From Macrostomum lignano (lineage: Eukaryota), in assembly GCA_002269645.1 (NCBI GenBank), contig NIVC01001979.1, positions 152,678 through 216,677 on the forward strand: 64,000 nt of DNA, given 5' to 3'. Of this stretch, positions 4,799 through 53,028 are shown in pieces; the first letter of the stretch is position 1, and each line of letters begins with the position of its first letter. The notes under the pieces were generated by a model. The model saw nothing but the letters and a program-made list of their open reading frames with translations. It was not told the DNA's origin and made no database searches. Made by a program: the position numbers and the translations under genes.

Positions 4799-5352
4799 TG
4801 CTCCTAGAAGAAGAAATTCAACAGTTGTGCTCCTAGAAGAAGACATTCAATAGTTGTGCTCCTAGAAGAAGACATTCAACAGTTGTGCTCCTAGAAGAAG
4901 ACACTTAACAGTTGCGCTCCTAGAAGAAGACACTCAACAGTTGTGCTCCTAGAAGAAGACACTTAACAGTTGCGCTCCTAGAAGAAGACACTCAACAGTT
5001 GTGCTCCTAGAAGAAGACACTTAACAGTTGCGCTCCTAGAAGAAGACACTCAACAGTTGTGCTCCTAGAAGAAGACACTTAACAGTTGCGCTCCTAGAAG
5101 AAGACATTCAACAGTATTGCTCCTAGAAGACATTCACCAGTTGCGCTCCTAGAAGAAGACATTCAACAGTTGTGCTCCTAGAAGACACTCAACAGTTGTG
5201 CTCCTAGAAGAAGACACTTAACAGTTGTGCTCCTAGAAGAAGACACTTAACAGTTGTGCTCCTAGAAGAAGACATTCAACAGTATTGCTCCTAGAAGACA
5301 TTCACCAGTTGCGCTCCTAGAAGAAGACATTCAACAGTTGTGCTCCTAGAGG
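4799..5352. repeat. 29-bp minisatellite (GCTCCTAGAAGAAGACATTCAACAGTTGT) with 26-bp variants
   Basis: Direct tandem periodicity, about 19 copies, just 3' of the MGME1 stop. Confidence 0.95.
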
Positions 5353-5426
5353 AGATTCGACAGTCCTGCTACTAAAAGAACCCCGGCAGAAAGCGCAGTG
5401 AAACACACGAGAGCCGCAGCAACCAA

Positions 5427-5876
5427 TCACCGAGTCAGCTTGGCAGCCGCCCGATCCTGAGCCAGCTGGAAGGCACGCAGCCGGTGCAGCCAGGCTGACC
5501 AGGCCGGCAGCAGCTGGTCGACGCCCAGCCGAAGGCAGGCGGCCGGCGAGCCGTCCGGATAGGCATAGACCAGAATAGCCGAATCAACTGGCGGCAAGCT
5601 ATCCTCGTTGCCATGACAACAGCGCCGCATTTGATTAAGCGCGCCCAGATACGAGGCCAACTGCAGCGGCGCATCGTAGGCATCTTTCAGGCCAGCAATT
5701 TTGCGTTCGTGCGCCGTTTTCCATTCGATCAGCAGCTCCGGCCGCTGCCTTCCGCTGTTGACGTCGCCTTCGTCTGGGCGCAGTCGAGCCAGGCAATCAA
5801 GTCGGCCTTTGTAGCCCAGCTGCTGGTGGACCACCAGCGCCTCCTGCGACTGCACGGATTCAACTGTACGCAGAAT
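5427..5876 (-). CDS. MGME1: Mitochondrial genome maintenance exonuclease 1 (PD-(D/E)XK nuclease), exon 2
   Basis: Acceptor CCCTACAG|ATT at 5877/5876, phase 0. ILRTVESVQSQEALVVHQQLGYKGRLDCLA...LLIEWKT...DAPLQLASYLGALN matches MGME1 motifs (GxxDC, IDWKT, PLQxxAYxGA). Stop TGA at 5427. Confidence 0.92.
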   Translation of the reverse strand: MLRTVESVQSQEALVVHQQLGYKGRLDCLARLRPDEGDVNSGRQRPELLIEWKTAHERKIAGLKDAYDAPLQLASYLGALNQMRRCCHGNEDSLPPVDSAILVYAYPDGSPAACLRLGVDQLLPAWSAWLHRLRAFQLAQDRAAAKLTR

Positions 5877-5999
5877 CTGTAGGGTTTGCAGATATATGGG
5901 GTACAATTTTGCAGAAAGAATTGCGAGCAGAATATGTGCTATAACATGAGGGGTCTTTGTTTAGTGCAGAAGATTCACATCCCTGAGTCTTTGTACATT

Positions 6000-6460
6000 T
6001 AGGAGATTCCCATCATATAGTCTTTGTCCGGTGGAGATTCCTGCTATATAGTCTTTGTCCAGTGGAGATTCCTGTCATATAGTCTTTGTCCAGTGGAGAT
6101 TCCTGTCATATAGTCTTTGTCCAGTGGAGATTCCTGTCATATAGTCTTTGTCCAGTGGAGATTCCTGTCATATATTCTCTGTCCAGTGGAGATTCTTGTC
6201 ATATAGTCTCTGTCCAGTGGAGATTCCTGTCATATATTCTCTGTCCAGTGGAGATTCCTGTCATATAGTCTTTGTCCAGTGGAGATTCCTGTCATATAGT
6301 CTTTGTCCAGTGGAGATTCCTGTCATATAGTCTTTGTCCAGTGGAGATTCCTGTCATATATTCTCTGTCCAGTGGAGATTCTTGTCATATAGTCTCTGTC
6401 CAGTGGAGATTCTTGTCATATAGTCTTTGTCCGGACTATTCATATAGTCTTTGTCCAGTT
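6000..6460. repeat. 31-bp intronic minisatellite (GTCTTTGTCCAGTGGAGATTCCTGTCATATA)
   Basis: Period 31, about 14 copies, inside the MGME1 intron. Confidence 0.95.
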
Positions 6461-7440: not shown

Positions 7441-8652
7441 GAATTAGAAAGCAATCTAGAAGAGGTAAAAGCAGTCAAAGACTTCCAGGAAAGAATACAA
7501 CTTGCATCACTTGCAACGCCAACTTATATAAACAAAAAAGCTATTAATTTTTTATACAACTGGAGCTCTCCTGCTCCACCTAACAAAAAATTGCTCCATG
7601 GCACATTTGCATATAAGCAAAATTTAGTACAAAATAGTTTTAGTAGAGACATTATAATATAATTTAAGAGTTTATTCTCTAACTGGGCCTCTTACCTATT
7701 AATTCATATCTTTACACCAAATCACTACCCATCCAACATCCAATTTTATTGCCTTATTTGGTGCTATAGACTTTTGTCGCCTACTGCTGCCATGTAAATT
7801 TTCAGTGGCATTTGAACTGATATTTACAAGCCAGTCAAAATACCTTCATAAGCTCCTCCTACTAATAGTAATCAGCTAAGCAAATCAACATACCTAATTA
7901 TGGGTGTCAAAACTTTGGTGTCTACCACTTGAACGACTGTGCTGCTAAATGACTGCTTGACTACGATTACGACTACCCTCCCCCAGACTTGAGACCCCAG
8001 CAGCCAGAGTAAAACAGGAGAAATTCATTGTGGTTTGTTTACACGATTTTTCTAAATTATTTGTGCAAACACAACGCCGGCAGAAATTCAAAGTTAAAAC
8101 TGCCCCACTTCATTGGTGTCAGCAAATCATCTAATCTACCAACCTACTTCTCTACCCCACCTCACTGGTAGACAGCTAAGTGGGATAACGAAATGCCGAG
8201 ACCCCTTCAACAAGTCATTCAAATGTTACGTTATGGCTTCTACTATTTCTATGGCTGCGAACGCAACAGCCAATGCTGCAGGTCCCAGCAATTTAATAAC
8301 AAGACAAACATATGATGAGATGATTTGCATGGTGACCAAAGAGGTATGACGGCGACTGGAGCAGACCAGCCTGGGCCAGCCGCAACACCATCATCATATA
8401 TCACTACAACCTATCCTGCAGTTGTCAGGATGGAGCTGCCAGATAATCTAATGTGTGATGAGTTTAAACAACAATTGTCTGAATGCTTTATGCATATGGC
8501 TGACATGCTAGAGTACTGGGAGCAGTTCCAATACTGCCAGCAAAACAAGAACACTAGCCTGGTTCAGCAAGTAGCACCGCCACCAGCGAGACATGTCCGG
8601 GTTCTTGAGGATGATGACAGTCAGATGCCCACTGGGATGCAACATGACAGTA

Positions 8653-9946
8653 CGAGGGGCACTACAGAAGTTTTTAGCTACACCTCAACTGTTTGTCCTA
8701 TCAGATTAATTTTCATAGGCTTACCTAGGACAATATATATGACCATGATGAATAAAATTTCACACAAATATCTTGCAGCATTTAGCCGCTAGAGCCAGAT
8801 AACTTCAGCACCTCTGCCCACTTTCCAGTGGAGCTCATGGAACTGAATCGCGAGCACTTTGTGCCATGCTCTTCTATGATTATTGCAGCAGCCTTGATTA
8901 CCGCCAGTGCCACGAAAGGCTGTCAGCGGCTTTCCCAGAAGCTGCTCTATCACTTGCGACCATCAGCAACTGGTTCTGTGAGTTTTGTTGTGGCCGAGAC
9001 TCATTGGAAGATGAGGAGCGTACAGGCCGACCTTCAACCGCCACAACACCAGTAACAGTGGCTTGTGTTTGCCAGCTGGTAGAAGCTGACCAGCGGATAA
9101 CCTACAAAGAGATCGAGGCATCTCTGGGCATCCATTTGCCGGCCATTGCCAAAATCCTCCACGACCATATCGGCTTGCGCAAGCTGACCAGTCGTTGGGT
9201 GCCCCACCTGCTAAAGCCTGAGCAGAAGAGGGTCGACTGGTGCCACCAGATGCTGCAGAAGTACAGCGATGGAGCGTCTAAGGTGGTCGCCAACATCATA
9301 ACATGCGACGAGACTTGGGTTTATTGCTACGAGCCAGAGCACAAGTGCCAGTCGCAGGTGTGGGCGTTTCCAGACGAGGTGCCGCCAACGAAGGTTGTGC
9401 GAGGCAGGAGCACCGGCAAGCAAATGGTCGCAACTTTTTTCTGTTGCTCAGGTCATGTGGCGACTGTGCGGCTGCTGGACCAGTGCAGGGTGACTGCGGC
9501 CCGGTATACCGGCATCTGCTTGCCACAGGTCATTCACAGCCTGAGCAGGACGCGTCCGAAGTCAGGTGTCCGAGGCCTGATGCTGCATTAGGACAACCCG
9601 AGCGCTCACACGGCTCAGGCAACACAGCAGTTCCTGCAGACTCAGGGACTGCAGCTGACCAGTCATCCACCATACTCGCCTGATCTGGCACTGTGACTTT
9701 TTTGTTCACTAAAGTTAAGGACTCGCTGCGTGGTTGCCGATTTTCGACTGCAGAGGAGGCTGCTGATGCATTTGACAAGATGGTGGAAGGGGTGTTGACT
9801 TCTGAGTGGCACCACTGCTTCGTCAACTGGTTTGAGAGGATGAGGCGCTGCATCCAGACTGGTGGAGAATTTGAGAAGCTGTGAAAATTTCAGCTTCATA
9901 GCTGCTTCCGTTTAGACGTAGCTAAAAACTTTTGTAGTGCCCCTCG
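8653..9946 (+). mobile_element. Full-length mariner (DD34D) transposon, inactive
   Basis: TA duplication (8651-8652 / 9947-9948). About 29-bp TIRs CGAGGGGCACTACA(G/A)AAGTTTTTAGCTAC with one mismatch; 1294 bp. Transposase 8837-9884 has WVPHLL, TCDETW, H*DN and YSPDLA motifs, frameshifts near 8861 and 9690, and a stop at 9589. Confidence 0.95.
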
Positions 9947-11995
9947 TAAGTCATCTTGGCTGAGAAAAACTGGTTGCATGAAGTGATGGATCAATAAGCC
10001 AAGACTCTACAAAAGCAGCGGCGAATCCTGGAGACTTTGAGTAATGAGATGTGAGAGTTCTACTCATAGGGATCACGCGACAATGACAACCCGGAGCCAT
10101 GGGAACCTGTTTGCCACCAGCCACGGGACTCCTGGAGCAGCGCAAGCGATGTCTGGTGCCCTCAACTCCTTGCTACAGTGCCAATGGAAGCGCCCAATTC
10201 ACAATACCCAGCACACGAATGGTGTCGCATCAACAGTTCTATCAACTTCAGCAACCACAAACAGTAGCAATCCACCACCAATAGGAGGTCAACATCAACA
10301 GTAGCAGCAGCAGCAGCAGCAGTCAAGTTGGGGATAGGGGGGCACCATTCACGTGTCGAACATTGGGTCCCTGTATGCCGACATGCAGCCACCATACCTA
10401 ATGACTGCAATGGCTACTAATTGCCCCCCATATAGGCAGAGCATAACAGAGACAGAGGCAGAGTCAGAGTCACAGGCACAGAAGCAGAAGCCGACTTGAA
10501 TAGCCTAGAGCTTAGGAGCATACTGTGGCTTTGCAGAGGTGCGGACAAAGCCAACACCTGATGCGGCCAGCGACGCCGATGCCGCGCCCATACCACAGTA
10601 GACAAACCCAGGAAAGAGCCTGGACAAGTACTCCGTATCCTGCAGATCAACTGCAATGGTCTCAGAGCCCGTCACATAGAGTTGTCCACGTGGCTCTACC
10701 AGGAGAAGCCTGTCGCGGTACTGGTGCAGGAATTGAAGCTCATGCCAGACCAGAGCTACAACCCGCCGACCAGGTACTGTGTTGCCACCCAATGCGATGG
10801 CGTCACCAAAACGACACAGAAACAAGCCGACCAACCCACAAGCAGCTCCCCACAAGAGCCGAGACAGACGATGCGGATGGATCGAAACCAAGGCCGGTTC
10901 CTAGGCCAGGGGGCCGACATGTGACGTGTCCAAAATGCCAACTGCGGTGGCCCGCCAACAAAACCGAGTGGTGCGGCGGCTGCCGAAGCGGCCACGCATG
11001 CTCCCGCTGCAACGAACCACAGACGAATGACAGGGGCGGCCAGCGTGACAACAGGGATAGCCCACACAACCAAGCCCACGGAGGAACACTTATCTTGGTC
11101 CACTGCGATGTCCCATGCGAGACGATCCCGCCACCCTGATTGCAGCGCATGGGCATTTTGAGCCTACAGTCAAGTTTCTGTTAGAGAAGGGATCACATGA
11201 CAACATCCTAGGCTTTGAGTTCCTGGAAAAGTATAGCAACTCACTGGACCTTGCAGCTGGGATGTTGTTCTTCAAGGACAGCAATGCCACACCACTTTGC
11301 TACATGCGAACTGAAGCTACCACGTGCAGAATTTATACGGCTGAGAGCACAACCATGCCGCCACTATTGTCAGCCTGAATAAAAATCAAATTAGCAAAAG
11401 GATGAGAAGAAAATCAAGGGACACCTGCCGTGATTGAGCTGCTAAAGCGGGCCCAACGCAAAGATGATGTGCAGCACCTACATGCTGGCCCTGCCTTAAT
11501 ATCTATGGTGAACAGAGAAGGCGCTATTGAAATGATTAACCAAGGTACAACATTGATTAAAGTGCAAGCAAATCCACTTGTCGGGATAGCAAGACCACTT
11601 TGACTGCCCAAATTAAAATGATTCCCACTGCTGAAGCCAGAAGCTTTAGTCAATCAGGTCCAAGATGAAGACCCTGACACTTGGATCAAGGAGATTGACA
11701 TTGGCAAAGACCTGTTTAGTGACTAGCATGCTCAAGTCATTGAGCTATTGAAGAAGTACAAGACCATCTTCTCCCAAGGTCACCTACAACATTGTGCTAA
11801 AGGACAGAGATCCTGTACATTTGCTGACACGAAGGATTCAGCCCAAGGTGTATCAGCTGCTTGACGATCTACTTGCCAAGGAAGTGATTCAACCAAGCTT
11901 CTCTAGCTACAACACCCCGCTGGTGATCATCCCAAAGAAGGATGGCAGCCTGAGAATTGTACAAGACTTCAGGAGTCTGAATCAGAAACAGGTAT

Positions 11996-12531: not shown

Positions 12532-15500
12532 GAGTACTTTCTATACCCAATACCAAATATCCAAGAAGCATTCCCCAGCCTCAAAGGAAGCTAGCTATTT
12601 AGCACATTCAATTTAAATAGCAGCTACTATCAGATTCCTCTGCATCTAGAAGACCAAGACCTGACTGCTTTCGCCATATGCTACACTGCAAACAATTCGC
12701 CTACAATGTTATGCCTATAGAATTAAGCTCAGCACTAGCCAGTTTCATGTGACTCATGAATGCTATGCTCAATGGGATTGCTTACAAAAGTGCAATGGCC
12801 TATCTGGATGATGTCATTTATTCTGAGAAATTCACTGACTATCTACAATATATGTAAGAAGTTTTCGAATGAATACAGGAAGCTAATCTAAAGTTCAAAG
12901 GCAAGAAGTGCCACCTATTTTGGGCAAGTCTAAATTATCTGGGACATATAATAACTTAGGATGAATCAAGACTGACCTAGCAAAGATTGAGGCAATTCAA
13001 ACCTGGCCGAAACCAAGAATGGCCCATCAACTTAAAAGCTTTGTCTGCACATGCACTTATTTATTATGCTAAATTTGTACCTGGCTATGCAGAACTTGCA
13101 GCTCTGCTCCACAATCTAATTAAAAAGAAAATCTGCAACTTCAATTGTTTATGGGGAAAAGCCTAACAAGATGCATTTAACCAGCTTAAGGCAGCTATAA
13201 CTTAGATATCAGTGCTCACATATCTGCAGTTCACTGAGGAATGAGGATCCTGGGGTAATATTTGTCTTATACATGGATGCTTTTGCAACCAAAATCAGAG
13301 CCTACCTGAGCCAATGCTAAGCTAACAAAGAAGAGTGCCCAATTGGCTATTCTTCCCAGCAACTCAAACTGGCCGAGGCCCAATATCCAATTATCAGATA
13401 TCCTGTTATCTAATATCCGAGGCCCAACACTCCAAGGATTCAAGGATGAATGCATGGAGGAGGCTCAACATGAGGTAACTGATGAGGACCAAAGTAAACA
13501 GCCAGCCATGATATCTGGCACAGTGGTGCTAAAGGTCCACAATAGCAGCCACCCTAGCCCTCCACTGAGCAAGAAACTATCAACCTGCCAGAATCAACTT
13601 ATTAGTGTTTAGGCCTATCACATCTATAGGTTTTTTGTCTTTTTGATAGCTTTTGATATGCAACTAGGCCTATGGGTTTTTTGAAAAGTATTCCAATAGG
13701 GCTAATCAATAAATTATATAATAATCAATTAGATAGCTTTATTAGGAAATAATGATTGACAAATATTTTTTATAATATTGCCATGGCCATATAGGATGGC
13801 ATTTTTATAATTTTAAAGGCCAAGGATATAAATTAAATATGTAAAATATTGTTAAAATTTAATACAATAGGTGAAAAGGGCCTAGCAATAGGATTTCTAG
13901 TTTTAGCATATGGCCATGGCCCATAAGGAGTCTATATAGAATCAAAGCTTATTTGCCTTTTAATTATGAATATGACAATAGATCTATAATTATATATGCT
14001 TATGATTTAATTTTATGTTATGTTCTATCCTGAAATTAGCATTAGATTAAAGACCAGTGGGCCACATATTTAACTTAGCTTGAAGTGGTAAGGTCAAAAC
14101 TATAACATAAGCAATTGTCAACTCAACCATGCAATATCAGCTTTGTCAACTGTTAGTTTCAATGGGTGCCAGTCAATTCGTCTTGCGCATTTTTTCCAGA
14201 ATTATTTATGTAAACGCAGACGAATGGCGGCAGACCAATCAACTGGAAACCGTTTTAATTAGGTTAAGATGTCTAGGTTTATGTTTTAATAATGGATTAC
14301 TTGAGACTTATTTACAGATGAATCTAATAAATTTGCTTTGGATCATTGGCTAAAATGAAGTTGAAATTATATAAAATAGAATATTTCGAATGCGATTTAA
14401 ACAAAATATATTATTTATGAATGAAATTATGAGCTAAGCTGTTCAAGCGAGCTCCAAGGATCAAGGTTGAGGCGCGGCCAGCGGCCCGTGCGCGAGCCGT
14501 TTGCACGTTTTTATTAATTTTGAATTTGCGCAAACCTTCTGGGAAAATGCAAATAACAAGAAAATAATTGCAAAACGCTTGCATTTTAAATATACTCAAA
14601 AACATTGAAAAGTCGCCACCTTTGAGAGTTCACAGTAAATTCTAGCTAAGAAATCACTTTTGAATGACGCAACTTGCGCACGCGACACAGAGTTGGGCTG
14701 GATGAGGCACCCGTGTCAGCAGTTTATACGCGAATTCAGCACAATTTTAGGTACGATAAACATGCATATCCTGCATGCTGGTTGCCTTTACTGCATGCTG
14801 GATACTCGTACATATTGCCTGCACAATGACAAACAAACTAGTACCGTCTAAATTCAATATTGTAGCCTAATCACAACTGAATAGTATTGCTTTCTATTCG
14901 TTAATAAAAAACGGGAGTTAAATACATTTCACTGTACAGAGTTAGTTATTCCTAAAGCAACTTTCGATACATCATCAATTTTGAATATGCTTAATTTTGA
15001 GTACAAGTGCCAGCAGCAGGCTTGTTTGAGCTGACTGCGATCCCTAAAATACAGATATGGATATTAGATATGACTTAGGGGCCTAGCCTAGATAGATGGA
15101 TCGTCAGAATATCATTAAAATAGATCATATCATCATCGTTAGGCCTACTACCTGGTTCTGCCACACTGACTAGACTTAGACTAGACTAGAGTCTAGACCT
15201 ATTCTATTGGTATAGAAAAATTAAAATCAAACTTGATGGGGTTGGGAAGCACATTGATCATTAAATATAGGCCTACCAAATAAATCAAGTTTTAATGCAT
15301 GGGGATAATAATAAGCTTTTAATATCAAAGCATTTTATTTTTAAAACCAAACAAAAAGTAAATGGTTAATTTCTAGCATAAAAAGTTCATTAGGCTAGGC
15401 CTACATTTATAAAACAAGAATGTTTTGACTAAATTCTCATTTTTGTTATTTAAATTTTGTTTTTGCCCCTAAATTATTGTGGCCATAATCATAGATATTT

Positions 15501-15914
15501 TGTATCTAGACTTTTCTTTCCTGCAAACATTTATTTTATCAAAGGTTATATTATTATAATTATGATATATCTATATTTATATAGCATTAGGTAAGATTAT
15601 GTTATTTAACCATTTTCATATTATAGTTCTAAAAAATTATAAAATTTAATGGTTACTTATAATATAAATCTATGTTTATATGCTAGTTTTGTTAATTAAT
15701 ATTTGTTGCCTTGGATAGGTAATTAACATGGTTAAATAATCTATGACCAAATTGGCTTAGGGGTAAAATAGTCTACAGGTGAAATTGTTTTAAATGCGAA
15801 ATTTCCATAGCTAACATAGCTTAAGGGAATAATGACCAGTTATTTTTTAATATGTTTGCTAATTTGCTTTGTTTTTTTTACCCAAGAAACAAATTTTTTA
15901 GATGCAGAATTATA

Positions 15915-17215
15915 TACCCTTTATACCCTCCCTATATTCTCCCTGTACCTTCCATACCCTTCATATACCCATCTTTATCTCTCTACATCCTCCATACCCC
16001 TTCCCTATACCCTAATGCTCTCTATATACCCTCTGTACACTCCATACCTTCCTATACTCTCTATACTCTCCCTATATCTATCTATACCCTCCATACTCTC
16101 TATACTTTCCCTATACCCATTTATACCCTCCCTATATACCTTCTCTGTACCTCCATACCCTCGCTATACCCTCCATACCCTTCCTATACCCTCCATACCC
16201 TTCCTATACCTTCCATACCCTCCATACTTTTTCTATACCCACCCATGGCCTCCCTGTACCCTCTATGCCCTCCATATACCCTCAATACTCTCCCTATACC
16301 CTCCATACCCTTCTATACCCATTCATACCCTCCATATACCCTCCATACCATCCCTATACCCTCCATACCATTCCTATACCCTCCATACCATCCCTATACC
16401 CTCCATACCATCCCTATACTCTCCTTATAACCTCTCCATACCCTCCATACCCTCCATACTTTTTCTATACCCACCCATGGCCTCCCTGTACCCTCTATGC
16501 CCTCCATATACCCTCAATACTCTCCCTATACCCTCCATACCCTTCTATACCCATTCATACCCTCCATATACCCTCCATACCATCCCTATACCCTCCATGC
16601 CCTCCCTATACTCTCCATACAATCCTGCTTTTCCTATACTTCTCCTTCCCGCGTTATACTTTTCCCTATCCAGCCTCTACTATCCCCTCTTTCCACCTCC
16701 AGCGCCTCCCCCTCTCTAGCCCCTACCCTCTCTTCCTTTACTTTCCAGCCCCCATCCTCTACTCCCCTCCAGCGCCCACCCTCTTCTCCCATCAGCCCCC
16801 ACCCTCTCCTCCACTCCAGCGCCCTCCCTCTCCTCCACTCCAGCGCCCTCCCTCTCCTCCACTCCAGCGCCCTCTCTCTCCTCCACTCCAGCGCCCTCCC
16901 TCTCCTCCACTCCAGCGCCCTCCCTCTCCTCCACTCCAGCGCCCTCCCTCTCCTCCAGTCCAGCGCCCTCCCTCTCCTCCACTCCAGCGCCCTCCCTCTC
17001 CTCCACTCCAGCGCCCTCCCTCTCCTCCACTCCAGCGCCCTCCCTCTCCTCCACTCCAGCGCCCTCCCTCTCCTCCAGTCCAGCGCCCTCCCTCTCCTCC
17101 AGTCCAGCGCCCTCCCTCTCCTCCACTCCAGCGCCCTCCCTCTCCTCCAGTCCAGCGCCCTCCCTCTCCTCCACTCCAGGGCCCTCCCTCTCCTCCACTT
17201 CAGCGCCCACCCTCT
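15915..17215. repeat. Left-arm pyrimidine-rich domain: degenerate ATACCCTCC repeats plus a 24-bp array (CTCCACTCCAGCGCCCTCCCTCTC)
   Basis: Direct periodicity; internal duplication of about 230 bp (near 16220 and 16450); mirrored at about 23020-24320. Confidence 0.9.
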
Positions 17216-18289
17216 ACTCTCCTTGGTTATGCCTTTGTTACGCTCTTCCCTCCTCTCTGTTTTACTTACTGTGTCATGCATAACCCGTCTGCTACAGTGT
17301 TTTTAAATAGCCTTTTATACCCTCCTCTTTCCCTAGCCCCTCCTCCCCGGCGGCTCCCCTTCTCGTAGCTCTGCTAATAAAATCGTAATTCTTCTTCTCT
17401 TCAGAATAATTTGCCCAGCTGCGAACTGTGATGGTGCATACCGGGTACTCGCAATTTAAAAAGCGTATGCTTCTTACTGATTTAATTCCGACGCAACCAA
17501 GCAAATCGTTTACTTTCAAGTCCGTGCATTTTTCTTGTGTTTAACTTTTCACCGTTCGGCGTTAATGCCGTGTGGCGTTGGTGTAATACTATCGCGAAAT
17601 TCAATTTCCAATGTCATTATATAACTATTGTCGCTTTTCTGTATTACAACTATATACTATACTTCTGCATTTATTGACGTAACATTGTGCCAATAATGTC
17701 ACATTGTGTGGCCCCAATATGAATCTGTTGCTGAATGCAACTTATAGCGCAATGACCATTTTAATCGCTTGAAATACATTGTAATGTAATACTGTATCGC
17801 TTTTGGCAATCGAAACGAGACTTTAGCCAGACTCCTCACTGATCCAAATGCTCCTCAAGCAAAGGTACGAGTATATGGAAAGCAGACTGAGCTCCGCAGA
17901 CTTAGTATATTTGATCTTCGGATCGCGGATAGAACCAAGGAAATCTTGGTACGTAAATAAAATTGGAGTCACTTTTCCTACTTCCACTTTCCCTGCTCTT
18001 TCCCTGACCACAGTCTGTGCCCCAGGCTTAAGTTAGACCAACGCAAAATACTAACCTGAATAGGAAGCAAGCAACTCACTTCCCACTCTAGTCTTTTTCT
18101 GCCACTGTTGTCTCTGTTGATCTCGTATGGCGTCCTATTTGAATTGGCGCAAGTCTCGTTTACATAGTCGAAAGCAATACTGGCGCCAATTATTTATGTC
18201 GATCAAGTTTCCTAGAGAATGATTTGTTGATAACTGTATATTCGCTGTCTTAGAGCTGCACGCTGTGTTTAACCATTAATTTGTCGTAG

Positions 18290-19222
18290 AGGAGCTGATG
18301 AAGGGAGGCGTTGGGGCGGACCTTTTGGAGGGGCGGAGCTGATGGGGGCGGTAGCGGTGGAGCTTTTGGAGGGGCGGAGCTGATGGGGGCGGTAGGGGCG
18401 GAGCTGATGGGGGGCGGTAGGGGCGGAGCTGATGGGGGCGGTAGGGGTGGAGCTGATGGGGGGCGGTAGGGGCGGAGCTGATGGGGGGCGGTAGGGGTGG
18501 AGCTGATGGGGGGCGGTAGGGGCGGAGCTGATGGGGGCGGTAGGGGCGGAGCTGATGGGGGCGGTAGGGGCGGAGCTGATGGGGGGCGGTAGGGGTGGAG
18601 CTGATGGGGGGGCGGTAGGGGCGGAGCTGATGGGGGGCGGTAGGGGCGGAGCTGATGGGGGGCGGTAGGGGCGGAGCTGATGGGGGGCGGTAGGGGCGGA
18701 GCTGATGGGGGCGGTAGGGGCGGAGCTGATGGGGGGCGGTAGGGGCGGAGCTGATGGGGGCGGTAGGGGCGGAGCTGATGGGGGCGGTAGGGGTGGAGCT
18801 GATTGGGGGCGGTAGGGGTGGAGCTGATGGGGGGCGGTAGGGGTGGAGCTGATGGGGGCGGTAGCGGCGGAGCTGATGGGGGGCGGTAGCGGCGGAGCTG
18901 ATGAGGGGCGGTAGGGGCGGAGCTGATGGGGGGCGGTAGGGGCGGAGCTGATGGGGGGCGGTAGCGGCGGAGCTGATGGGGGGCGGTAGGGGCGGAGCTG
19001 ATGGGGGGCGGTAGCGGCGGAGCTGATGGGGGGCGGTATTGGTGGAGCTGATGGGGGGCGGTAGGGGCGGAGCTGATGGGGGGCGGTAGGGGCGGCGCTG
19101 ATGGGGGCGGTAGTGGTGGAGCTGATGGGGGGCGGTAGGGGTGGAGCTGATGGGGGGCGGTAGCGGCGGAGCTGATGGGGGGCGGTAGCGGCGGAGCTGA
19201 TGGGGGGCGGTAGGGGCGGAGC
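18290..19222. repeat. Left-arm G-rich 22-25-bp array (GGGGGCGGTAGGGGCGGAGCTGAT)
   Basis: About 38 units with variable G-runs; G-quadruplex-compatible; GGGGCGG boxes. Confidence 0.92.
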
Positions 19223-20435
19223 CCTACGTGTGCGTGTATTCGAGCTACGCTGGTAGTGTAGTTGTTTGTCTAGTATAGTTTATACATGCGTATACTGTAT
19301 GTACATGTAGTCTCACAATCCCAGCAAAAGCTAGACATTTTATTTCTTTGGTTAGTAATCGTGGGGATAATAGATCCACATGCAGCTATATCGTCATTCA
19401 GTCAAGTTTTGAACCCAGATATACAAAATACTCGTATCTTGTCAGTCAAGTTGAGAATCCCCACTGACAAAGCAACATTGAAAAAAGTCGCCACTCTATG
19501 CGCCAGTGAGCTAGCTTCTAGCTTGGACTAATCTGAAATAAAAGATACGAGAAAACTGAGGCGTAGCTTTAATCCGTCCAACTCTCGCACACCGCGATCC
19601 CCTTCCCCCACTTCATTCCTCAACCCAAGTCGTCTTGTGGCGTAATGCTATAAGTTGCGTCACTCGCAAGATTGAGAGACAGTGCAGAGACAGTCGAAGC
19701 TTCTAGGGACGGAACTTACGGAGGGGGAGGCCGGTAGAGGCGGACTTGTGGGAGGGAGGAGTTTGAGGGAGGGAGGACTTCTCACTCACAATTCAACCCT
19801 CGAGTTACGCAAATAAGTCGCCGCGAGTGAATCAATATAAACGTCAGTCGAGCAAAATCAACACAATTATTTTTTTGCAATATGCAGTTAGAATCACAAA
19901 TGCTTAAGAACGATCCCTCGCATGCTGAAGTGCGGCGACTTTGCGGGGCATCCCCAGGATGAGGCGGCGCAGAAAATTCTCAGGCTTTATTTTTAGTGTG
20001 TTTTAGCCATATTTAGACGGCCACTCCGACATGGTACATGTAATTGGATTGAGCCTTGAAAGTACTCAGCAACATTATACATAAAGTGGCGCACAATGAA
20101 TTAAGACCACCTAACACAAATTCGAACTTTTAGTTTCATAACCTTCACAGATTGCGGAAGCATTTAATCTAATCAGTTATAGATAACCGTGGTATCAATC
20201 AGTAAAATTATAGTTATGTGTTGTGTAATTACTCACAATTGAGTCTGTTTAATTGAAGTCCTTATCTCACAATCGAATTTGATAAGTCACACAGTAATGA
20301 GACCACTTAATTAATTGGGCTAAAAGGTGCTACAACAGTGGCCCTGCTGATTCCAAAGTCCAAAACATCCAAGTCCAAGTCCAAAACATCAAATTCAATA
20401 CAACCCAAGCAAAAATGATCTCGAACTCTCCTAGA

Positions 20436-21020
20436 ATGGGAAAGGCAAAGCTCTATCGCCTGAATCGTGTAGGAAAATCAGGGCCCTGTTCGACCAAGGA
20501 GTTTCCCAGCGTGCCAAAGTCACGTACGCGCATCCAGCAGCAAGCATTCAGGCGCCTCAGCAGCACTGGCAGCACAGGCTGTGCCTCAAGACCTGGCGGG
20601 CACCGAAAACTGACCACCGACTGGATCGACGAATTGTGCGAATGCCCGAGTCCAACCGTCGGCTAACCGCTGTGGACATCAGCCGTGAACTTCAGGTGTC
20701 CAGCTGCACCCCATGACTGTCCGCCGCCGTCTGGTAGCTGCCGGACTGCATGGCCGCATTGCTAGGAAGAAGCCATTCATCTCCGACAAAAACCGGAAGC
20801 GGCGCTTGAACTGGGCGAAGCAACATGCAAGCTCTACACCCCAGGACTGGGGCCAAGGTCATCTGAAGTGATGAGAGCAAATTTTCCCGCACTGGTTCTG
20901 ATGGTCGCCGGTATGTGCTGCCAGTTTCAGCAGGACAACGATCCGAAGCTTGCTGAGAACAACATCCGCACCATGGACTGGCAATCCAATTGAGAATCTG
21001 TGCAACTGGGTCGAGCGGGA
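20436..21020 (+). pseudogene. Degenerate, internally deleted Tc1-like transposase in the foldback spacer
   Basis: Across frameshifts: KIRALFDQGVSQR, DRRIVRM..NRRLTAVDISREL, TVRRRLVAAGLHGRIARKKPFISDKNRKRRLNWAKQH, WAKVI*SDESKF, FQQDNDPK, PIENL; cut off at the start of the right arm. Confidence 0.88.
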
Positions 21021-21216
21021 CTGGGTTCATAACTTGACCGAATGACGATATAGCTGCATGTGGATCTAATATCCCCACGATTACTAACCAAAGAAATAAA
21101 ATGTCTAGCTTTTGCTGGGATTGTGAGACTACATGTACATACAGTATACGCATGTATAAACTATACTAGACAAACAACTACACTACCAGCGTAGCTCGAA
21201 TACACGCACACGTAGG

Positions 21217-21935
21217 GCTCCGCCCCTACCGCCCCCCATCAGCTCCGCCGCTACCGCCCCCCATCAGCTCCACCCCTACCGCCCCCCATCAGCTCCACCA
21301 CTACCGCCCCCATCAGCGCCGCCCCTACCGCCCCCATCAGCTCCGCCCCTACCGCCCCCCATCAGCTCCACCAATACCGCCCCCATCAGCTCCGCCGCTA
21401 CCGCCCCCCATCAGCTCCGCCCCTACCGCCCCCCATCAGCTCCGCCGCTACCGCCCCCATCAGCTCCGCCCCTACCGCCCCCATCAGCTCCGCCCCTACC
21501 GCCCCTCATCAGCTCCGCCGCTACCGCCCCCATCAGCTCCGCCGCTACCGCCCCCATCAGCTCCACCCCTACCGCCCCCAATCAGCTCCGCCCCTACCGC
21601 CCCCATCAGCTCCGCCCCTACCGCCCCCATCAGCTCCGCCCCTACCGCCCCCCATCAGCTCCGCCCCTACCGCCCCCCATCAGCTCCGCCCCTACCGCCC
21701 CCCATCAGCTCCGCCCCTACCGCCCCCCATCAGCTCCGCCCCTACCGCCCCCCATCAGCTCCGCCCCTACCGCCCCCATCAGCTCCACCCCTACCGCCCC
21801 CATCAGCTCCGCCCCTACCGCCCCCATCAGCTCCGCCCCTACCGCCCCCATCAGCTCCGCCCCTCCAAAAGCTCCACCGCTACCGCCCCATCAGCTCCGC
21901 CCCTCCAAAAGGTCCGCCCCAACGCCTCCCTTCAT
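21217..21935. repeat. Right-arm C-rich array (mirror of 18290-19222, about 200 bp shorter)
   Basis: CCGCCCCTACCGCCCCCCATCAGCT units; the copy-number difference explains nearly all of the arm length difference. Confidence 0.92.
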
Positions 21936-23019
21936 CAGCTCCTCTACGACAAAGTAATGGTTAAACACAGCGTGCAGCTCTAAGACAGCGAATATACAGT
22001 TATCAACAAATCATTCTCTAGGAAACTTGATCGACATAAATAATTGGCGCCAGTATTGCTTTCGACTATGTAAACGAGACTTGCGCCAATTCAAATAGGA
22101 CGCCATACGAGATCAACAGAGACAACAGTGGCAGAAAAAGACTAGAGTGGGAAGTGAGTTGCTTGCTTCCTATTCAGGTTAGTATTTTGCGTTGGTCTAA
22201 CTTAAGCCTGGGGCACAGACTGTGGTCAGGGAAAGAGCAGGGAAAGTGGAAGTAGGAAAAGTGACTCCAATTTTATTTACGTACCAAGATTTCCTTGGTT
22301 CTATCCGCGATCCGAAGATCAAATATACTAAGTCTGCGGAGCTCAGTCTGCTTTCCATATACTCGTACCTTTGCTTGAGGAGCATTTGGATCAGTGAGGA
22401 GTCTGGCTAAAGTCTCGTTTCGATTGCCAAAAGCGATACAGTATTACATTACAATGTATTTCAAGCGATTAAAATGGTCATTGCGCTATAAGTTGCATTC
22501 AGCAACAGATTCATATTGGGGCCACACAATGTGACATTATTGGCACAATGTTACGTCAATAAATGCAGAAGTATAGTATATAGTTGTAATACAGAAAAGC
22601 GACAATAGTTATATAATGACATTGGAAATTGAATTTCGCGATAGTATTACACCAACGCCACACGGCATTAACGCCGAACGGTGAAAAGTTAAACACAAGA
22701 AAAATGCACGGACTTGAAAGTAAACGATTTGCTTGGTTGCGTCGGAATTAAATCAGTAAGAAGCATACGCTTTTTAAATTGCGAGTACCCGGTATGCACC
22801 ATCACAGTTCGCAGCTGGGCAAATTATTCTGAAGAGAAGAAGAATTACGATTTTATTAGCAGAGCTACGAGAAGGGGAGCCGCCGGGGGGGAGGGGCTAG
22901 GGAAAGAGGAGGGTATAAAAGGCTATTTAAAAACACTGTAGCAGACGGGTTATGCATGACACAGTAAGTAAAACAGAGAGGAGGGAAGAGCGTAACAAAG
23001 GCATAACCAAGGAGAGTAG

Positions 23020-24320
23020 AGGGTGGGCGCTGAAGTGGAGGAGAGGGAGGGCCCTGGAGTGGAGGAGAGGGAGGGCGCTGGACTGGAGGAGAGGGAGGGC
23101 GCTGGAGTGGAGGAGAGGGAGGGCGCTGGACTGGAGGAGAGGGAGGGCGCTGGAGTGGAGGAGAGGGAGGGCGCTGGAGTGGAGGAGAGGGAGGGCGCTG
23201 GAGTGGAGGAGAGGGAGGGCGCTGGAGTGGAGGAGAGGGAGGGCGCTGGAGTGGAGGAGAGGGAGGGCGCTGGACTGGAGGAGAGGGAGGGCGCTGGAGT
23301 GGAGGAGAGGGAGGGCGCTGGAGTGGAGGAGAGGGAGGGCGCTGGAGTGGAGGAGAGAGAGGGCGCTGGAGTGGAGGAGAGGGAGGGCGCTGGAGTGGAG
23401 GAGAGGGAGGGCGCTGGAGTGGAGGAGAGGGTGGGGGCTGATGGGAGAAGAGGGTGGGCGCTGGAGGGAGTAGAGGATGGGGGCTGGAAAGTAAAGGAAG
23501 AGAGGGTAGGGGCTAGAGAGGGGGAGGCGCTGGAGGTGGAAAGAGGGGATAGTAGAGGCTGGATAGGGAAAAGTATAACGCGGGAAGGAGAAGTATAGGA
23601 AAAGCAGGATTGTATGGAGAGTATAGGGAGGGCATGGAGGGTATAGGGATGGTATGGAGGGTATATGGAGGGTATGAATGGGTATAGAAGGGTATGGAGG
23701 GTATAGGGAGAGTATTGAGGGTATATGGAGGGCATAGAGGGTACAGGGAGGCCATGGGTGGGTATAGAAAAAGTATGGAGGGTATGGAGGGTATGGAGAG
23801 GTTATAAGGAGAGTATAGGGATGGTATGGAGGGTATAGGGATGGTATGGAGGGTATAGGAATGGTATGGAGGGTATAGGGATGGTATGGAGGGTATATGG
23901 AGGGTATGAATGGGTATAGAAGGGTATGGAGGGTATAGGGAGAGTATTGAGGGTATATGGAGGGCATAGAGGGTACAGGGAGGCCATGGGTGGGTATAGA
24001 AAAAGTATGGAGGGTATGGAAGGTATAGGAAGGGTATGGAGGGTATAGGAAGGGTATGGAGGGTATAGCGAGGGTATGGAGGTACAGAGAAGGTATATAG
24101 GGAGGGTATAAATGGGTATAGGGAAAGTATAGAGAGTATGGAGGGTATAGATAGATATAGGGAGAGTATAGAGAGTATAGGAAGGTATGGAGTGTACAGA
24201 GGGTATATAGAGAGCATTAGGGTATAGGGAAGGGGTATGGAGGATGTAGAGAGATAAAGATGGGTATATGAAGGGTATGGAAGGTACAGGGAGAATATAG
24301 GGAGGGTATAAAGGGTATAT
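23020..24320. repeat. Right-arm purine-rich domain (mirror of 15915-17215)
   Basis: GAGAGGGAGGGCGCTGGAGTGGAG units and GGAGGGTAT degenerate repeats. Confidence 0.9.
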
Positions 24321-26815
24321 AATTCTGCATCTAAAAAATTTGTTTCTTGGGTAAAAAAAACAAAGCAAATTAGCAAACATATTAAAAAATAACTGGTCAT
24401 TATTCCCTTAAGCTATGTTAGCTATGGAAATTTCGCATTTAAAACAATTTCACCTGTAGACTATTTTACCCCTAAGCCAATTTGGTCATAGATTATTTAA
24501 CCATGTTAATTACCTATCCAAGGCAACAAATATTAATTAACAAAACTAGCATATAAACATAGATTTATATTATAAGTAACCATTAAATTTTATAATTTTT
24601 TAGAACTATAATATGAAAATGGTTAAATAACATAATCTTACCTAATGCTATATAAATATAGATATATCATAATTATAATAATATAACCTTTGATAAAATA
24701 AATGTTTGCAGGAAAGAAAAGTCTAGATACAAAATATCTATGATTATGGCCACAATAATTTAGGGGCAAAAACAAAATTTAAATAACAAAAATGAGAATT
24801 TAGTCAAAACATTCTTGTTTTATAAATGTAGGCCTAGCCTAATGAACTTTTTATGCTAGAAATTAACCATTTACTTTTTGTTTGGTTTTAAAAATAAAAT
24901 GCTTTGATATTAAAAGCTTATTATTATCCCCATGCATTAAAACTTGATTTATTTGGTAGGCCTATATTTAATGATCAATGTGCTTCCCAACCCCATCAAG
25001 TTTGATTTTAATTTTTCTATACCAATAGAATAGGTCTAGACTCTAGTCTAGTCTAAGTCTAGTCAGTGTGGCAGAACCAGGTAGTAGGCCTAACGATGAT
25101 GATATGATCTATTTTAATGATATTCTGACGATCCATCTATCTAGGCTAGGCCCCTAAGTCATATCTAATATCCATATCTGTATTTTAGGGATCGCAGTCA
25201 GCTCAAACAAGCCTGCTGCTGGCACTTGTACTCAAAATTAAGCATATTCAAAATTGATGATGTATCGAAAGTTGCTTTAGGAATAACTAACTCTGTACAG
25301 TGAAATGTATTTAACTCCCGTTTTTTATTAACGAATAGAAAGCAATACTATTCAGTTGTGATTAGGCTACAATATTGAATTTAGACGGTACTAGTTTGTT
25401 TGTCATTGTGCAGGCAATATGTACGAGTATCCAGCATGCAGTAAAGGCAACCAGCATGCAGGATATGCATGTTTATCGTACCTAAAATTGTGCTGAATTC
25501 GCGTATAAACTGCTGACACGGGTGGATGAGGAGAGGTTGGGAAGAGCGGAGGGCGAAGATTGGATGGATAGAAGCTTTCGCCGGGTTTTCATTGTTTTTA
25601 AGCATTTTTAAATATCAAAATGGTTAGCCAGGTGATGACGCTGGTCGAAAGACACTGCTCACTGGGACAAAGGGTGGCAAATTTTGAATGTTGCTGAGTA
25701 TATGCACACGTGCACAGTATATGTCTTATTTAAGAAGTTATAGATCTAATGTTTTAATTCATAACATTTCGCTATAGCTTGCAGCATCTTCAGGCTAGAA
25801 GTAAAAACGGTGAGTGCTTAAAAGTTTAAAATATTAATTGGATTCAGCTTCACCACAAAGTTGTAAGTACACTCCTGCAGCCCCTTCTTCCGCCGACTCG
25901 ATCATGTATGAATGTACATGTACCTTAACCTCACGTACACCAACCGCCTTACTCCCTCGCTACCAAAGTTTTAACCAATCACAGCGCGACTAGCCGACTA
26001 GCTACAGTAGGCATGTTCAGTCTCGTCACTTTTTAAAGCGATGCCGGTCATGCAGTCCAAGGCGGGTCAATGTCTATCTGTTCATACGTTACGTGCATGT
26101 GTGCTGCGTGACTTCAGCCAGTGCAGTTGGATTTAGGGGAGGTGCACAGCTGGGCCGCCCTCCCCCCGTTGAGTTAGAATTTTTTAATTTTTTTATATGG
26201 AAAATACACATTATCGCTCGTGTACATGTACATATACATGTACCTTAGTAATCTGCGCCCCCCATACAAAATTTTCTGGATTCGCACCTGACTTTAGCTC
26301 TAAATATAAGCAAATCTCAATTATACCTCGATCCCTTGCTTACGAGGGAAATTACATCAGCTTCATTGACATATCGATTCGTATTACTCTAACGATATTT
26401 TTATTGAACTTGTACTCATAATTTTTTAAATTTTGTCCTATGCTTCAATTGCAATATCAGCAATAACATTAACTACAGTACATGTTATACAGTGTACGCC
26501 AAGCTTATTTACATTTAGCTAGTCAATATATTATATAATTATGAATTAAATTATGAATGAAAAGTAGGGTATTTTTATTTTTTACAACACAAATATATCT
26601 CAACTCGTCTTTGTTAGAGAACACAAAAAATTAATTTTTACACGTATATAAATACAACAGTACACAGTGTACTTCAGTTATACCACTGATGTACATTTAC
26701 GAAGTATGTGCAACAAAATGTTTAAAGTGAATTTTTCTATACATTTAGTTAATCTTTTTTACAAATTAGTTAGTGACGTTCATGCCATGGATAATTGTGC
26801 ATCCGTTTCACCAGA

Positions 26816-27184: not shown

Positions 27185-27795
27185 CATAGTCTGCTCTCCC
27201 GCACTGCACCCAGGTCATAGAGTCTGCTCTCCCGCACTGCACCCAGGTCATGGAGTCTGCTCTCCTGCACTGCACCCAGGTCATAGAGTCTGCTCTCCTG
27301 CACTGCACGCAGGTCATAGAGTCTGCTCTCCTGCACTGCACCCAGGTCATAGAGTCTGCTCTCCTGCACTGCACCCAGGTCATGGAGTCTGCTCTCCTGC
27401 ACTGCACCCAGGTCATAGAGTCTGCTCTCCCGCACTGCACCCAGGTCATGGAGTCTGCTCTCCTGCACTGCACCCAGGTCATGGAGTCTGCTCTCCTGCA
27501 CTGCACCCAGGTCATAGAGTCTGCTCTCCTGCACTGCACCCAGGTCATGGAGTCTGCTCTCCCGCACTGCACCCAGGTCATAGAGTCTGCTCTCCCGCAC
27601 TGCACCCAGGTCATGGAGTCTGCTCTCCTGCACTGCACCCAGGTCATAGAGTCTGCTCTCCTGCACTGCACCCAGGTCATAGAGTCTGCTCTCCTGCACT
27701 GCACCCAGGTCATAGAGTCTGCTCTCCCGCACTGCACCCAGGTCATAGAGTCTGCTCTCCTGCACTGCACCCAGGTCACAGAGTCTGCTCTCCCC
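27185..27795. repeat. 33-bp intronic minisatellite (AGAGTCTGCTCTCCTGCACTGCACCCAGGTCAT)
   Basis: About 18 copies in the TMEM222 intron; source of the repetitive ORFs. Confidence 0.95.
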
Positions 27796-33026: not shown

Positions 33027-33240
33027 GGGGCCCATCACAAGCTCGAAAAATCACATCGTCGAAAAGGTTAACAACCACCATCACAAGCTCGAATAGGGTT
33101 AGGGTTAGAGCTTGTGCTTAGGGGTAGGGTTTAGGGTTAGGTTAGGGTTGGGGTTAGGGTTAGAGCTTGTGATTTTTTGAGCTTGTGATGGTGGTTGCTA
33201 GACTTTTCGACGATGTGATTTTTCGAGCTTGTGATGGTGG
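33027..33240. mobile_element. Small insertion with about 59-bp inverted repeats around a telomere-like (TTAGGG)n core
   Basis: IRs 33032-33090 / 33179-33237 nearly perfect; flanked by 8-bp direct repeat CTTTAGCA (33019-33026, 33241-33248). Confidence 0.75.
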
Positions 33241-33804
33241 CTTTAGCACGTAAAATCCTAGAAAAATGCATGGGTTACAATTTCTACACAAAGTACATGT
33301 ATTAGACTTCTTGCGTATCTTACAGTATGCGCGTTTTTGCAATGCCTCAGTGCGGATCAGATATCGGAGCTTGCATATGTTTACGTGTACGTGACGAAAT
33401 GATGTCGTTCTGAATTCAACTCTAATTGCTAAATATCCATAAGCTAGTGTTGAGATAGTCAGATAGCAGTTAGATTCCCTTACATCAGGGGTTGACAAAC
33501 TTATTTACCTCAAGGGTCAGCTAAATAATCAGCTCACGGCTGCGGGCCAGATAGATGCGAGAGAAGAGGAGAAGGAATAGTAGATGGAAGAGGAAAGAGA
33601 AGATGAGAGATAACAGAAAGTGAGAAGGGAGAGGCGAGAGAGGTGTTTTCGTAGAAATCTATCCGCAGCTTGTTTTTTCACATTTCTCTAATAACAATTG
33701 ACCCGTATACAACTGCCTGAACAAGTAATTTTTAAGTATGAACAATCGCATTCTGTTAAGGTAATGATAATTGTTAATGATAACAATTGGACTTCCTTGA
33801 GCCA

Positions 33805-34620
33805 TCCTCCGGGGTGCTTCAGGGAGATACGCTTGCGCCGTTCCTGTTGGTCCTGGTGCTTGACTGGATGCTGCGGACCGCTCTCCCTTCTACCGACGAC
33901 GGCTTTCTGCTGCAGCGACGCGTGGGTCGACGCCAACCGGAGAGGCGGCTCAGCGTGCTTGCCTGCTCCGACGGTCTCGTCATGTTGTCGTCGACCGTCG
34001 AGGGCGCCCAGCACCAGCTGGACCGGCTGGTGAGCGTTTCAGCGAGTGTTGGCCTGGTGGTCAACACTCAGAAGACCGCGTGCTCTGCATGCCTGCCGGA
34101 CGACATCAAAGCAACTATTTTGTGCGGACAGGTGACGAGGCTTCCCCGCTGTCAACAGTTTGTCTACCTCGGCGGTCTGGTGCCTGGCGTTTGCGAGGAC
34201 CTGCGACGCCGCCGTGGACTTGCCTGGGCTGCCTTCCGTTCCGTGAGGGTCGTCCTGCAGTCTGAGACCCTGCCTGATCGCTAGAGGGCGGCGCTGTTTC
34301 AGGCGGTGATCGAGACCGTCCTGTTGTACAACGCCGAGACCTGGACGCTGACGGATTCGCTCGAACAACTGGTCGATGCGGCGCACGCTGGCCTGCTGCG
34401 CGCCGCCTTCAAGATCGGCTACGAGCGAGTCACCAATGCGGCACTCTATCGCTGCACCGGCCCAGCGAACTGTTGCGCCATCGGCGACTCCAGCTGGTAG
34501 GCCTTATTATCCAAGCTGAGTCGTAGTGCCCGCTGCCGGTGCAGGAGGTGCTGTTGCTCACGCTGCAGGCACCCTACCGGCGGGTGATGCCGGCGCCCCG
34601 GACACTGCCGGCGGTGCGCC
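33805..34620 (+). mobile_element. 5'-truncated non-LTR retrotransposon (RTE/RTEX-like) RT and thumb fragment
   Basis: SSGVLQGDTLAPFLLVLVLDW, decayed YADD (LACSDG), GLVVNTQKT, FVYLGG, RRRRGLAWAAF, LFQAVIETVLLYNAETWTLT; stops and frameshifts. Confidence 0.88.

Positions 34621-52166: not shown

Positions 52167-53028
<862 letters not shown>

Follow-up and report, generated by a model that had tools for sequence, protein, structure and literature searches.

Introduction

Foldback elements are a structural class of transposons and do not form a clade. They follow a scheme of flanking, repeat-bearing outer, inner and middle domains (PMC4079207), and most have been tied to the Mutator/Phantom lineage, with target site duplications (TSDs) of 8-10 bp, usually 9 bp (PMC4079207, PMC3169594). 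Galileo is the P-superfamily exception among them, with a 7-bp TSD and terminal inverted repeats (TIRs) of 0.3-1.26 kb (PMC3573991). Herein, we describe a 10.8-kb palindromic element at positions 14708-25524 of a 64,000-nucleotide stretch of flatworm DNA (contig NIVC01001979.1, positions 152,678 to 216,677, of the Macrostomum assembly GCA_002269645.1), the whole of which is called the window below. The element is probably a single integrated copy of a class II, cut-and-paste transposon that is non-autonomous and has the layout of classical foldbacks. The palindromic unit entered a 284-bp Tc1-type miniature inverted-repeat transposable element (MITE) as a whole, with duplication of the 7-bp target GATGAGG, and it encodes no transposase of its own. 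To our knowledge, no foldback family has been described in Platyhelminthes, and a literature search on foldback elements in flatworms or Macrostomum, or on the terminal sequence, returned nothing relevant.

Results

Structure and boundaries of the foldback element

The element measures 10,817 bp, of which the two arms (4711 and 4504 bp) make up 85% and the spacer between them 1602 bp. The left arm (14708-19418, + strand) opens with the terminus CACCCGTGTCAGCAG, and the right arm (21021-25524, - strand) is its reverse complement. An inverted-repeat search of the window recovered three collinear arm blocks, namely 14708-16766/23466-25524 (2059 nt, 100% identity), 16765-18347/21886-23468 (1583 nt, 100%) and 19128-19418/21021-21311 (98%); the remaining inverted pairs were register shifts within arrays. 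When the left arm (4711 nt) was globally aligned with the right arm (4504 nt) in reverse complement, the two differed by three indels (100, 74 and 25 bp), every one of them within a 25-bp G-rich array, by about 10 substitutions and by nine 1-nt indels, the latter mostly in G runs. A first-pass annotation of the window had placed the arms at these coordinates and had described them as differing in array copy number and a few substitutions or indels only, and both statements were reproduced by the block search and the alignment.

Long inverted duplications are known in long-read data, and many of the 1-nt differences between the arms fall in G homopolymers, as would suit an assembly mis-join or a chimeric, palindromic long read. 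However, the arms are unequal in array number and differ by about 10 substitutions, and they therefore represent two separately assembled sequences. The spacer between them is a unique 1.6-kb stretch of transposon debris and holds no adapter, the outer ends are sharp and carry a 7-bp TSD, and the flanks rebuild a MITE, which is confirmed by a paralogue. Moreover, the element lies away from the contig ends, the window is free of Ns, and neither an artefactual palindrome nor a local inverted duplication would interrupt an existing MITE so cleanly. An assembly artefact is thus very unlikely.

The element begins with CACCCGTG... and ends with ...CACGGGTG. Its junctions read GGGCTG GATGAGG|CACCCGTGTCAGCAG... 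on the left and ...CTGCTGACACGGGTG|GATGAGG AGAGG on the right (G|CACCC and GGGTG|G at the boundary itself), and the inverted repeat reaches the final base. The two 7-bp copies of GATGAGG lie at 14701-14707 and 25525-25531, where the first-pass annotation had also seen them. The probability that two flanking 7-mers are identical by chance is 6e-5 in theory and 2e-4 as determined empirically in this repeat-rich window.

Two longer readings of the duplication were rejected. An 8-bp TSD, GGATGAGG, which had been put forward as an alternative to the 7-bp one, counts the last G of the element twice and leaves the termini unequal by 1 nt, and a 9-bp TSD fails on the difference between the left TGGATGAGG and the right GATGAGGAG.

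TSD length bears directly on a possible origin from the Mutator/Phantom lineage, as in the foldbacks FB of Drosophila, Tetris and Tm1, or from a hAT element with an 8-bp duplication. The foldback layout speaks for such an origin, most foldbacks being assigned to Mutator (PMC4079207, PMC3169594), and an 8-bp reading, GGATGAGG, becomes available when the terminus and the TSD have one base in common. Against this, the TSD is 7 bp rather than 8-10 bp, no 9-bp reading exists, and the 8-bp reading comes at the price of unequal termini. In addition, a CAC terminus does not fit the YARNG ends of hAT elements; where hAT elements combine an 8-bp TSD with equal YARNG-type ends, the element here has the terminus CACCC, and one end is shortened by 1 nt once 8 bp are assumed. 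We regard a Mutator or hAT origin as improbable, and the FB-like family that had been suggested at first is disfavoured by the same mismatch of 7 bp with 8-10 bp.

Three features of foldbacks are present, namely long TIRs around a short middle domain, arms bearing arrays, and a TSD. The arms exceed the described TIRs known to us, as had been noted from the start, and are about 3.6 times as long as the longest reported Galileo TIR. We know of no cut-and-paste element with TIRs longer than the 4.5-4.7 kb found here.

The interrupted MITE and its uninterrupted paralogue

When the element and one 7-mer are taken out, the flanks join into a 284-bp unit (14593-14707 + 25532-25700), referred to as R. 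R has TIRs of about 45 nt, TACTCA(A/G)(A/C)AACATT(G/C)AAAA..GCCACC..TTTG, with TA on either side, and is a Stowaway-like MITE of the Tc1/mariner type. Its left half (14593-14700, + strand) opens with the TIR start TACTCAAAAACATTGAAAAGTCGCCACC, preceded by TA, and about 45 nt of it match 25700-25656 in inverted orientation; its right half (25532-25700, + strand) ends in ...GGTGGCAAATTTTGAATGTTGCTGAGTA, followed by TA. The reconstructed empty site reads ...GAGTTGGGCTG-GATGAGG-AGAGGTTGGGAAG.... The TA flanks and TIRs that mark Tc1/mariner elements are thus found in R, unlike in the large element, which has no TA flanks and contains Tc1-like sequence as a truncated remnant within the spacer.

The 19-nt motif AACATTGAAAAGTCGCCAC occurs just three times in the window, at 14601 (+) in the left flank, at 25674 (-, 3 mismatches) in the right flank and at 19476 (+) in the spacer, where the variant has one additional A and the core AAGTCGCCAC is exact at 19485. 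At this spacer site lies R' (19471-19673, + strand), an uninterrupted and older paralogue of R in opposite orientation to the flanks, with 85% identity in aligned columns. Along R', the alignment passes through the right flank (25695 down to 25532), one CCTCA(A/T)C (the single CCTCAAC of R', on the other strand relative to GATGAGG) and the left flank (14700 down to 14652). The local alignment score was 132, whereas shuffled sequences scored 53 +/- 7.6 with a maximum of 76. Given that R' is continuous across the insertion point and has one 7-mer there, the flanks were once contiguous and 7 bp were duplicated; the alignment also places the insertion point exactly at the end of the inverted repeat. 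R' thereby provides a paralogous empty-site control that fixes the boundaries of the element. The foldback insertion with a 7-bp TSD, as proposed in the first-pass annotation, is therefore upheld, with the flanks rejoining as R and R' lying uninterrupted.

These junctions also bear on a palindromic segmental duplication without any transposon, in which the 7-bp identity of the flanks would be due to chance. Large palindromes with spacers do form by fold-back priming at breaks. Nevertheless, such a duplication would copy sequence from the vicinity, and one of its arms would run on into the surrounding DNA, whereas here both arms stop at one nucleotide inside an otherwise intact MITE, and the chance of a matching 7-mer is only about 2e-4. 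We consider this explanation extremely unlikely.

In 64 kb there are two copies of R, one interrupted by the element and the other carried in its spacer. That R is both target and cargo could possibly reflect coincidence with an abundant family, a target preference or a history of nesting. In the comparison with M. lignano, no orthologous empty site was recovered; the synaptotagmin exon described below is the only alignable part (79% nucleotide identity), and the non-coding DNA is too diverged.

Modular organization and divergence of the arms

Each arm is modular and internally repetitive and contains three arrays. Coordinates are given for the left arm (+ strand). The outer, or flanking, domain (14708-15911) is unique and AT-rich (30% GC) and is 100% identical between the arms. 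Within it, the direct repeat CTGCATGCTGG lies at 14771-14781 and 14791-14801 and is mirrored at 25451-25461 and 25431-25441, so that the paired motifs sit 64 and 84 nt from either end of the element. There follows a degenerate C-rich array of 10/20-bp units (TACCCTCCA..., 15912-16625) with a 232-bp higher-order repeat and a GC skew of -0.91, and then a 24-bp array of 20 copies (TCCAGCGCCCTCCCTCTCCTCCAC, 16744-17219). A unique non-coding block (17220-18369; 43% GC, CpG observed/expected 0.94) separates these from the 25-bp G-rich array (AGGGGCGGAGCTGATGGGGGGCGGT, 18370-19222), which has 34 copies in the left arm and 26 in the right arm (21217-21864). The arm closes with a unique inner tip (19223-19418), which holds three of the five non-array substitutions between the arms. 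The modular layout that had been sketched before was recovered here in all five of its module types, each with coordinates.

No open reading frame (ORF) longer than 85 aa was found in the unique parts of the arms. Pfam searches of the ORFs of flanks and arms gave nothing relevant to the element, and the Rfam and tRNA scans found no Rfam family and no tRNA anywhere in the window.

The divergence of the arms is uneven. No substitution was found in the outer 2036 bp, two were found in the 1150-bp unique block, and three in the 196-bp inner tip, which amounts to no divergence across the outer 2 kb and to 0.2-1.5% further in. This rise towards the centre was significant in Fisher tests (p=0.0035 and p=0.011). 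Had the arms come from one recent duplication, they should differ evenly along their length, and the gradient speaks against an origin in a single, very recent step. It is in keeping with arm-to-arm conversion or with repair tracts initiated at the ends, for instance following abortive cleavage of a single end; fraying beside the loop could be another source. Recent mobilisation is compatible with the perfect TSD and the 0-0.2% arm divergence, and arm-to-arm conversion could yield equal identity.

The spacer and its Tc1-like remnant

The middle domain, or spacer (19419-21020, + strand, 1602 bp), is a mosaic of Tc1-family debris made up of four pieces, which are an initial 52 bp, R' (19471-19673), about 390 bp without assignment, and a Tc1-like copy from 20063 onwards. 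The first 52 bp include a degenerate direct copy of the final 30 bp of the left arm. This direct repeat (19388-19418 versus 19427-19463) begins 8 bp into the spacer and may be a scar of the event that made the inner boundary.

The Tc1-like transposon copy (20063-21020, + strand) is frameshifted and 3'-truncated and begins with TACTCAGCAACATT, a 14-mer that is common to the TIR of R and the start of this copy. Past the 14-mer, the R TIR did not significantly resemble the beginning of the Tc1 copy when judged against shuffled sequences. Through the common 14-mer, the Tc1-like copy is probably the parental element of R, a link that we hold as tentative. Its transposase remnant (about 20400-21020) is frameshifted and internally deleted and stops near NPIENLW at the inner edge of the right arm; the frame-corrected translation matched the Pfam domain HTH_Tnp_Tc3_2 with E=7.6e-21. 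It had been stated at first that no intact transposase is present, and this is correct as far as intact genes are concerned, but the degenerate Tc1-like remnant had been overlooked.

Tc1 transposition requires duplication of TA. A Tc1 enzyme was rejected as the mobilising activity, the Tc1 family duplicating TA and the element having a 7-bp TSD.

As the right arm abuts a broken Tc1 frame, the inner edge of the arm is not a natural element end but the breakpoint of a rearrangement. No extension of the inverted repeat into the spacer was detected (score 39, against 36 +/- 5 for shuffles). Two independent insertions of a 4.6-kb element were likewise considered and rejected, the inner arm ends having neither a TIR nor a duplication.

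The breakpoint is one of the grounds for supposing that the element is a unique product, in which fold-back repair converted a conventional short-TIR element into a giant palindrome at the time of this insertion or shortly before it, and of which no other giant copy exists. One copy is seen, and its arms are almost identical, as would be expected in that case. On the other hand, the TSD surrounds the finished palindrome, which means that the complete structure integrated at least once, and the uneven divergence of the arms argues against so recent a single-step origin. In a genome of hundreds of Mb, the absence of further copies from 64 kb also carries little weight. A unique product is therefore possible, although we would not favour it.

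Search for other copies and superfamily assignment

Several results weigh against the reading of the element as a foldback transposon. BLASTN of the whole element found no second copy of any part of it in the 64-kb window, and a search with the 17-nt terminus, allowing up to 3 mismatches, gave no further copy there either; with a single copy, mobility as a family is unproven, and the new giant family and the active transposase elsewhere in the genome that the first-pass annotation had proposed are conjectural. All 35 ORFs of 38 aa or longer in the spacer, the left junction and the unique portions of the arms were joined into a 1783-aa query, which had no relatives among 5.8 billion proteins, and four exact-ORF look-ups, one of them with an ORF of a mariner-like element, returned nothing on record. 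The 22-nt terminus had 0 matches in the JGI metagenomes, where the paired subterminal motif was met at 17 loci, none of which was similar beyond the motif, as expected of chance matches. No transposase that makes 7-bp duplications was detected in the window. The terminal motif CACCCATG occurs just twice per arm, and the arrays do not repeat it in the manner of secondary binding sites, and no clear microhomology was seen at the inner junctions, where a fold-back repair model might look for it. Finally, the structure is known from the assembled sequence alone.

The superfamily was considered next. P-superfamily elements make 7-8-bp duplications, and the 7 bp observed here fall within that range. 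A Galileo-like P-superfamily element, dependent on a THAP/P-type transposase for its mobility, would account for the 7-bp TSD and for termini that start with CA, and it would agree with the long TIRs and the internal arrays unequal between TIRs, as in non-autonomous Galileo (PMC3573991). The first-pass annotation had favoured this family; its 7-bp TSD and CA termini stand, but no THAP/P-type transposase ORF or remnant was found in the element or the window. An assignment to Galileo or the P superfamily would derive from the duplication length and the CA dinucleotide, the latter being the one terminal feature shared with P, 1360 or Galileo ends. Dada elements (6-7 bp) and some Mutator-like elements (MULEs) also reach 7-bp duplications, which weighs further against a Galileo-like origin. 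Arrays in the arms, which had been taken as a hallmark, are not diagnostic; they cover 43% of an arm and 27% of the window outside the element, and an M. lignano contig is alike in this respect. Being ubiquitous in this genome, they carry no information on family. In addition, Galileo has been described in Drosophilidae only (PMC10990002). Collectively, a Galileo-like identity is a doubtful, if still reasonable, assignment.

It may be, but we would propose it only tentatively, that this copy represents an undescribed, still mobile family of giant foldbacks in macrostomid flatworms, moved by a P-like transposase that cuts with a 7-bp stagger and perhaps prefers Tc1-type MITEs like the one in the spacer of the element. 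The label that the evidence supports is a foldback-type, non-autonomous DNA transposon with a P-compatible duplication length, the superfamily being left blank. With one copy known and no transposase identified, it stands at present as a well-documented curiosity and not as a discovery.

Genomic surroundings and other features of the window

The element is intergenic and lies about 14 kb upstream of the first coding exon of synaptotagmin-1. The window begins within this exon (1 to about 530, - strand), which encodes the N-terminus, the transmembrane segment and the start of C2A. Its product has 74% protein identity to M. lignano BOX15_Mlig032421g1, the best match among the 5.8 billion proteins, and an M. 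lignano contig aligns with this exon alone, at 79% nucleotide identity. With such divergence, the stretch most likely derives from a Macrostomum species distinct from the sequenced M. lignano strain, or else represents a divergent paralogous locus. At the other side of the window, a Musashi-like RNA-binding protein is encoded, with two RNA recognition motif exons at 55218-55520 (-) and about 60045-60160 (-).

Outside the element, about 27% of the window consists of 26 unrelated minisatellite arrays with 12-41-bp units and lengths of 0.1-1.4 kb each, for example within 1649-6432, 27188-27793, 35772-39376, 45659-46858, 50546-53027, 54056-57961 and 62467-63310. They also occur in introns of the Musashi-like gene, and a 14-kb M. 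lignano contig (L002) carries three similar arrays. The generation of minisatellites looks like a lineage-wide tendency.

Two other inverted structures were noted. A small foldback-like MITE (59264-59973, 710 bp) has 266-nt arms that are 94% complementary around a 180-nt loop; the arms consist of units of about 14 bp (GAGATTTGCCCGC), and the termini are GGGTCCATGAGAATTGCCCGC and GGGAGCACGAGAAATGCCCGC. It is located in an intron of the Musashi-like gene, adjoining an exon, and sits in an (ATAG)n microsatellite, which renders its TSD ambiguous (4, 8 or 12 bp). Its arrays begin nearly at the ends, like those of FB/Tm1-type (Mutator-linked) elements. At 33032-33237, a 62-nt inverted repeat (94%) encloses an 82-nt loop of degenerate TTAGGG-like, telomere-type repeats, and this structure could represent either a remnant of interstitial telomeric sequence or a small hairpin element.

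Remnants of further transposons are scattered through the window. A mariner-like element (8651-9948) has 39-nt TIRs (90%) and a truncated transposase ORF of 241 aa (8866-9591) with matches to HTH_32 and HTH_Tnp_Tc3_2, both under the Pfam gathering cut-offs; its closest relatives are proteins of 76% identity from sequencing-run assemblies. Retroelement debris at 10562-11994 includes endonuclease-like, retropepsin-like and Ty3-type reverse transcriptase-like ORFs, recognised by eye with no Pfam match, and a reverse-transcriptase fragment lies at 33784-34281 (RVT_1, E=6e-4, below the Pfam cut-off). Lastly, 111 bp at 57350-57460 are 82% identical to L002 9495-9604, part of a called 506-aa M. lignano gene. 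In L002, this gene and the synaptotagmin exon are about 5 kb apart; here, the corresponding sequences are about 57 kb apart and in the other relative orientation. The match could be due to a common repeat, or to rearrangement together with repeat-driven expansion of the interval.

Discussion

The following course of events would be consistent with the structure of the element. Its mobility would have been supplied in trans, by a transposase whose cuts in the target are staggered by 7 bp and which would recognise the perfectly inverted termini (CACCCGTG...), perhaps together with the paired subterminal CTGCATGCTGG; judged by TSD length, the P superfamily would be the leading candidate source of such an enzyme. 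Before that, a one-sided progenitor (terminus, arm, spacer) would most likely have lost its other end, and the lost end may have been rebuilt by fold-back or template-switch repair, with the element's own arm copied out to the terminal nucleotide. Rebuilding by arm copying would explain why the repeat is perfect to its last base. The identity of the arms would since have been maintained by arm-to-arm conversion from the ends, and the tandem arrays would be a by-product of the lineage's general tendency to make minisatellites, with no signature of a family. The host would presumably gain nothing from the element, which would act as a large potential hairpin and recombination substrate. On a smaller scale, growth by recruitment of internal sequence, along with independent array expansion in each TIR, has been described for the TIRs of Galileo (PMC3573991).

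If other copies exist, foldback transposons would be extended to Platyhelminthes, and the known upper limit of TIR length for cut-and-paste elements would rise about fourfold. It would then have to be asked how a transposase synapses ends across a potential hairpin of 4.6 kb, and how the palindrome survives replication. Inverted arms of several kb are strong substrates for inversions, for hairpin and small RNA production, and for chromosome breakage. Copies of Galileo and FB produce natural inversions in Drosophila, and Macrostomum genomes are known for karyotype instability; a family of such elements, if real, would be a candidate driver of that instability. More generally, repeat-rich flatworm assemblies hold structured elements that are missed by homology-based libraries of transposable elements.

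With regard to known systems, the sea urchin TU foldbacks, a marine invertebrate family, resemble the element in having a middle domain between long inverted arms of modular build, but their arms are shorter than 1 kb and their duplications are 8 bp. The element agrees in layout with the foldback scheme of PMC4079207. Among described elements, Galileo, and especially its non-autonomous '2T' copies, resembles it in the 7-bp TSD and in TIRs that make up nearly the whole copy, and likewise in TIR arrays of unequal copy number and in TIR growth by internal recruitment (PMC3573991). The two differ in scale, the TIR maximum of Galileo being 1.26 kb (PMC3573991) and the arms here being 4.5-4.7 kb; in addition, the element has three unrelated arrays per arm, lacks a THAP/P transposase and resides in a flatworm, whereas Galileo resides in Drosophilidae. 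FB/FB4 of Drosophila, Tetris of D. virilis and Tm1 of Meloidogyne have the same domain layout, are non-coding and carry minisatellite-like arrays in their arms (PMC4079207, PMC3169594, PMC2955051). They differ in their 8-10-bp TSDs, as opposed to 7 bp here, and whole copies of FB4 (0.6-2.3 kb) are shorter than one arm of the element (PMC2955051). Moreover, the arrays of FB and Tm1 start a few bases from the ends; those of the present element follow 1.2 kb of unique sequence. Genomic palindromes with spacers, which arise by fold-back repair or inverted duplication, likewise have near-identical arms of several kb around a unique spacer, with conversion as the likely homogeniser; the element is set apart from them by its defined inverted termini, its TSD and its precise interruption of an existing repeat.

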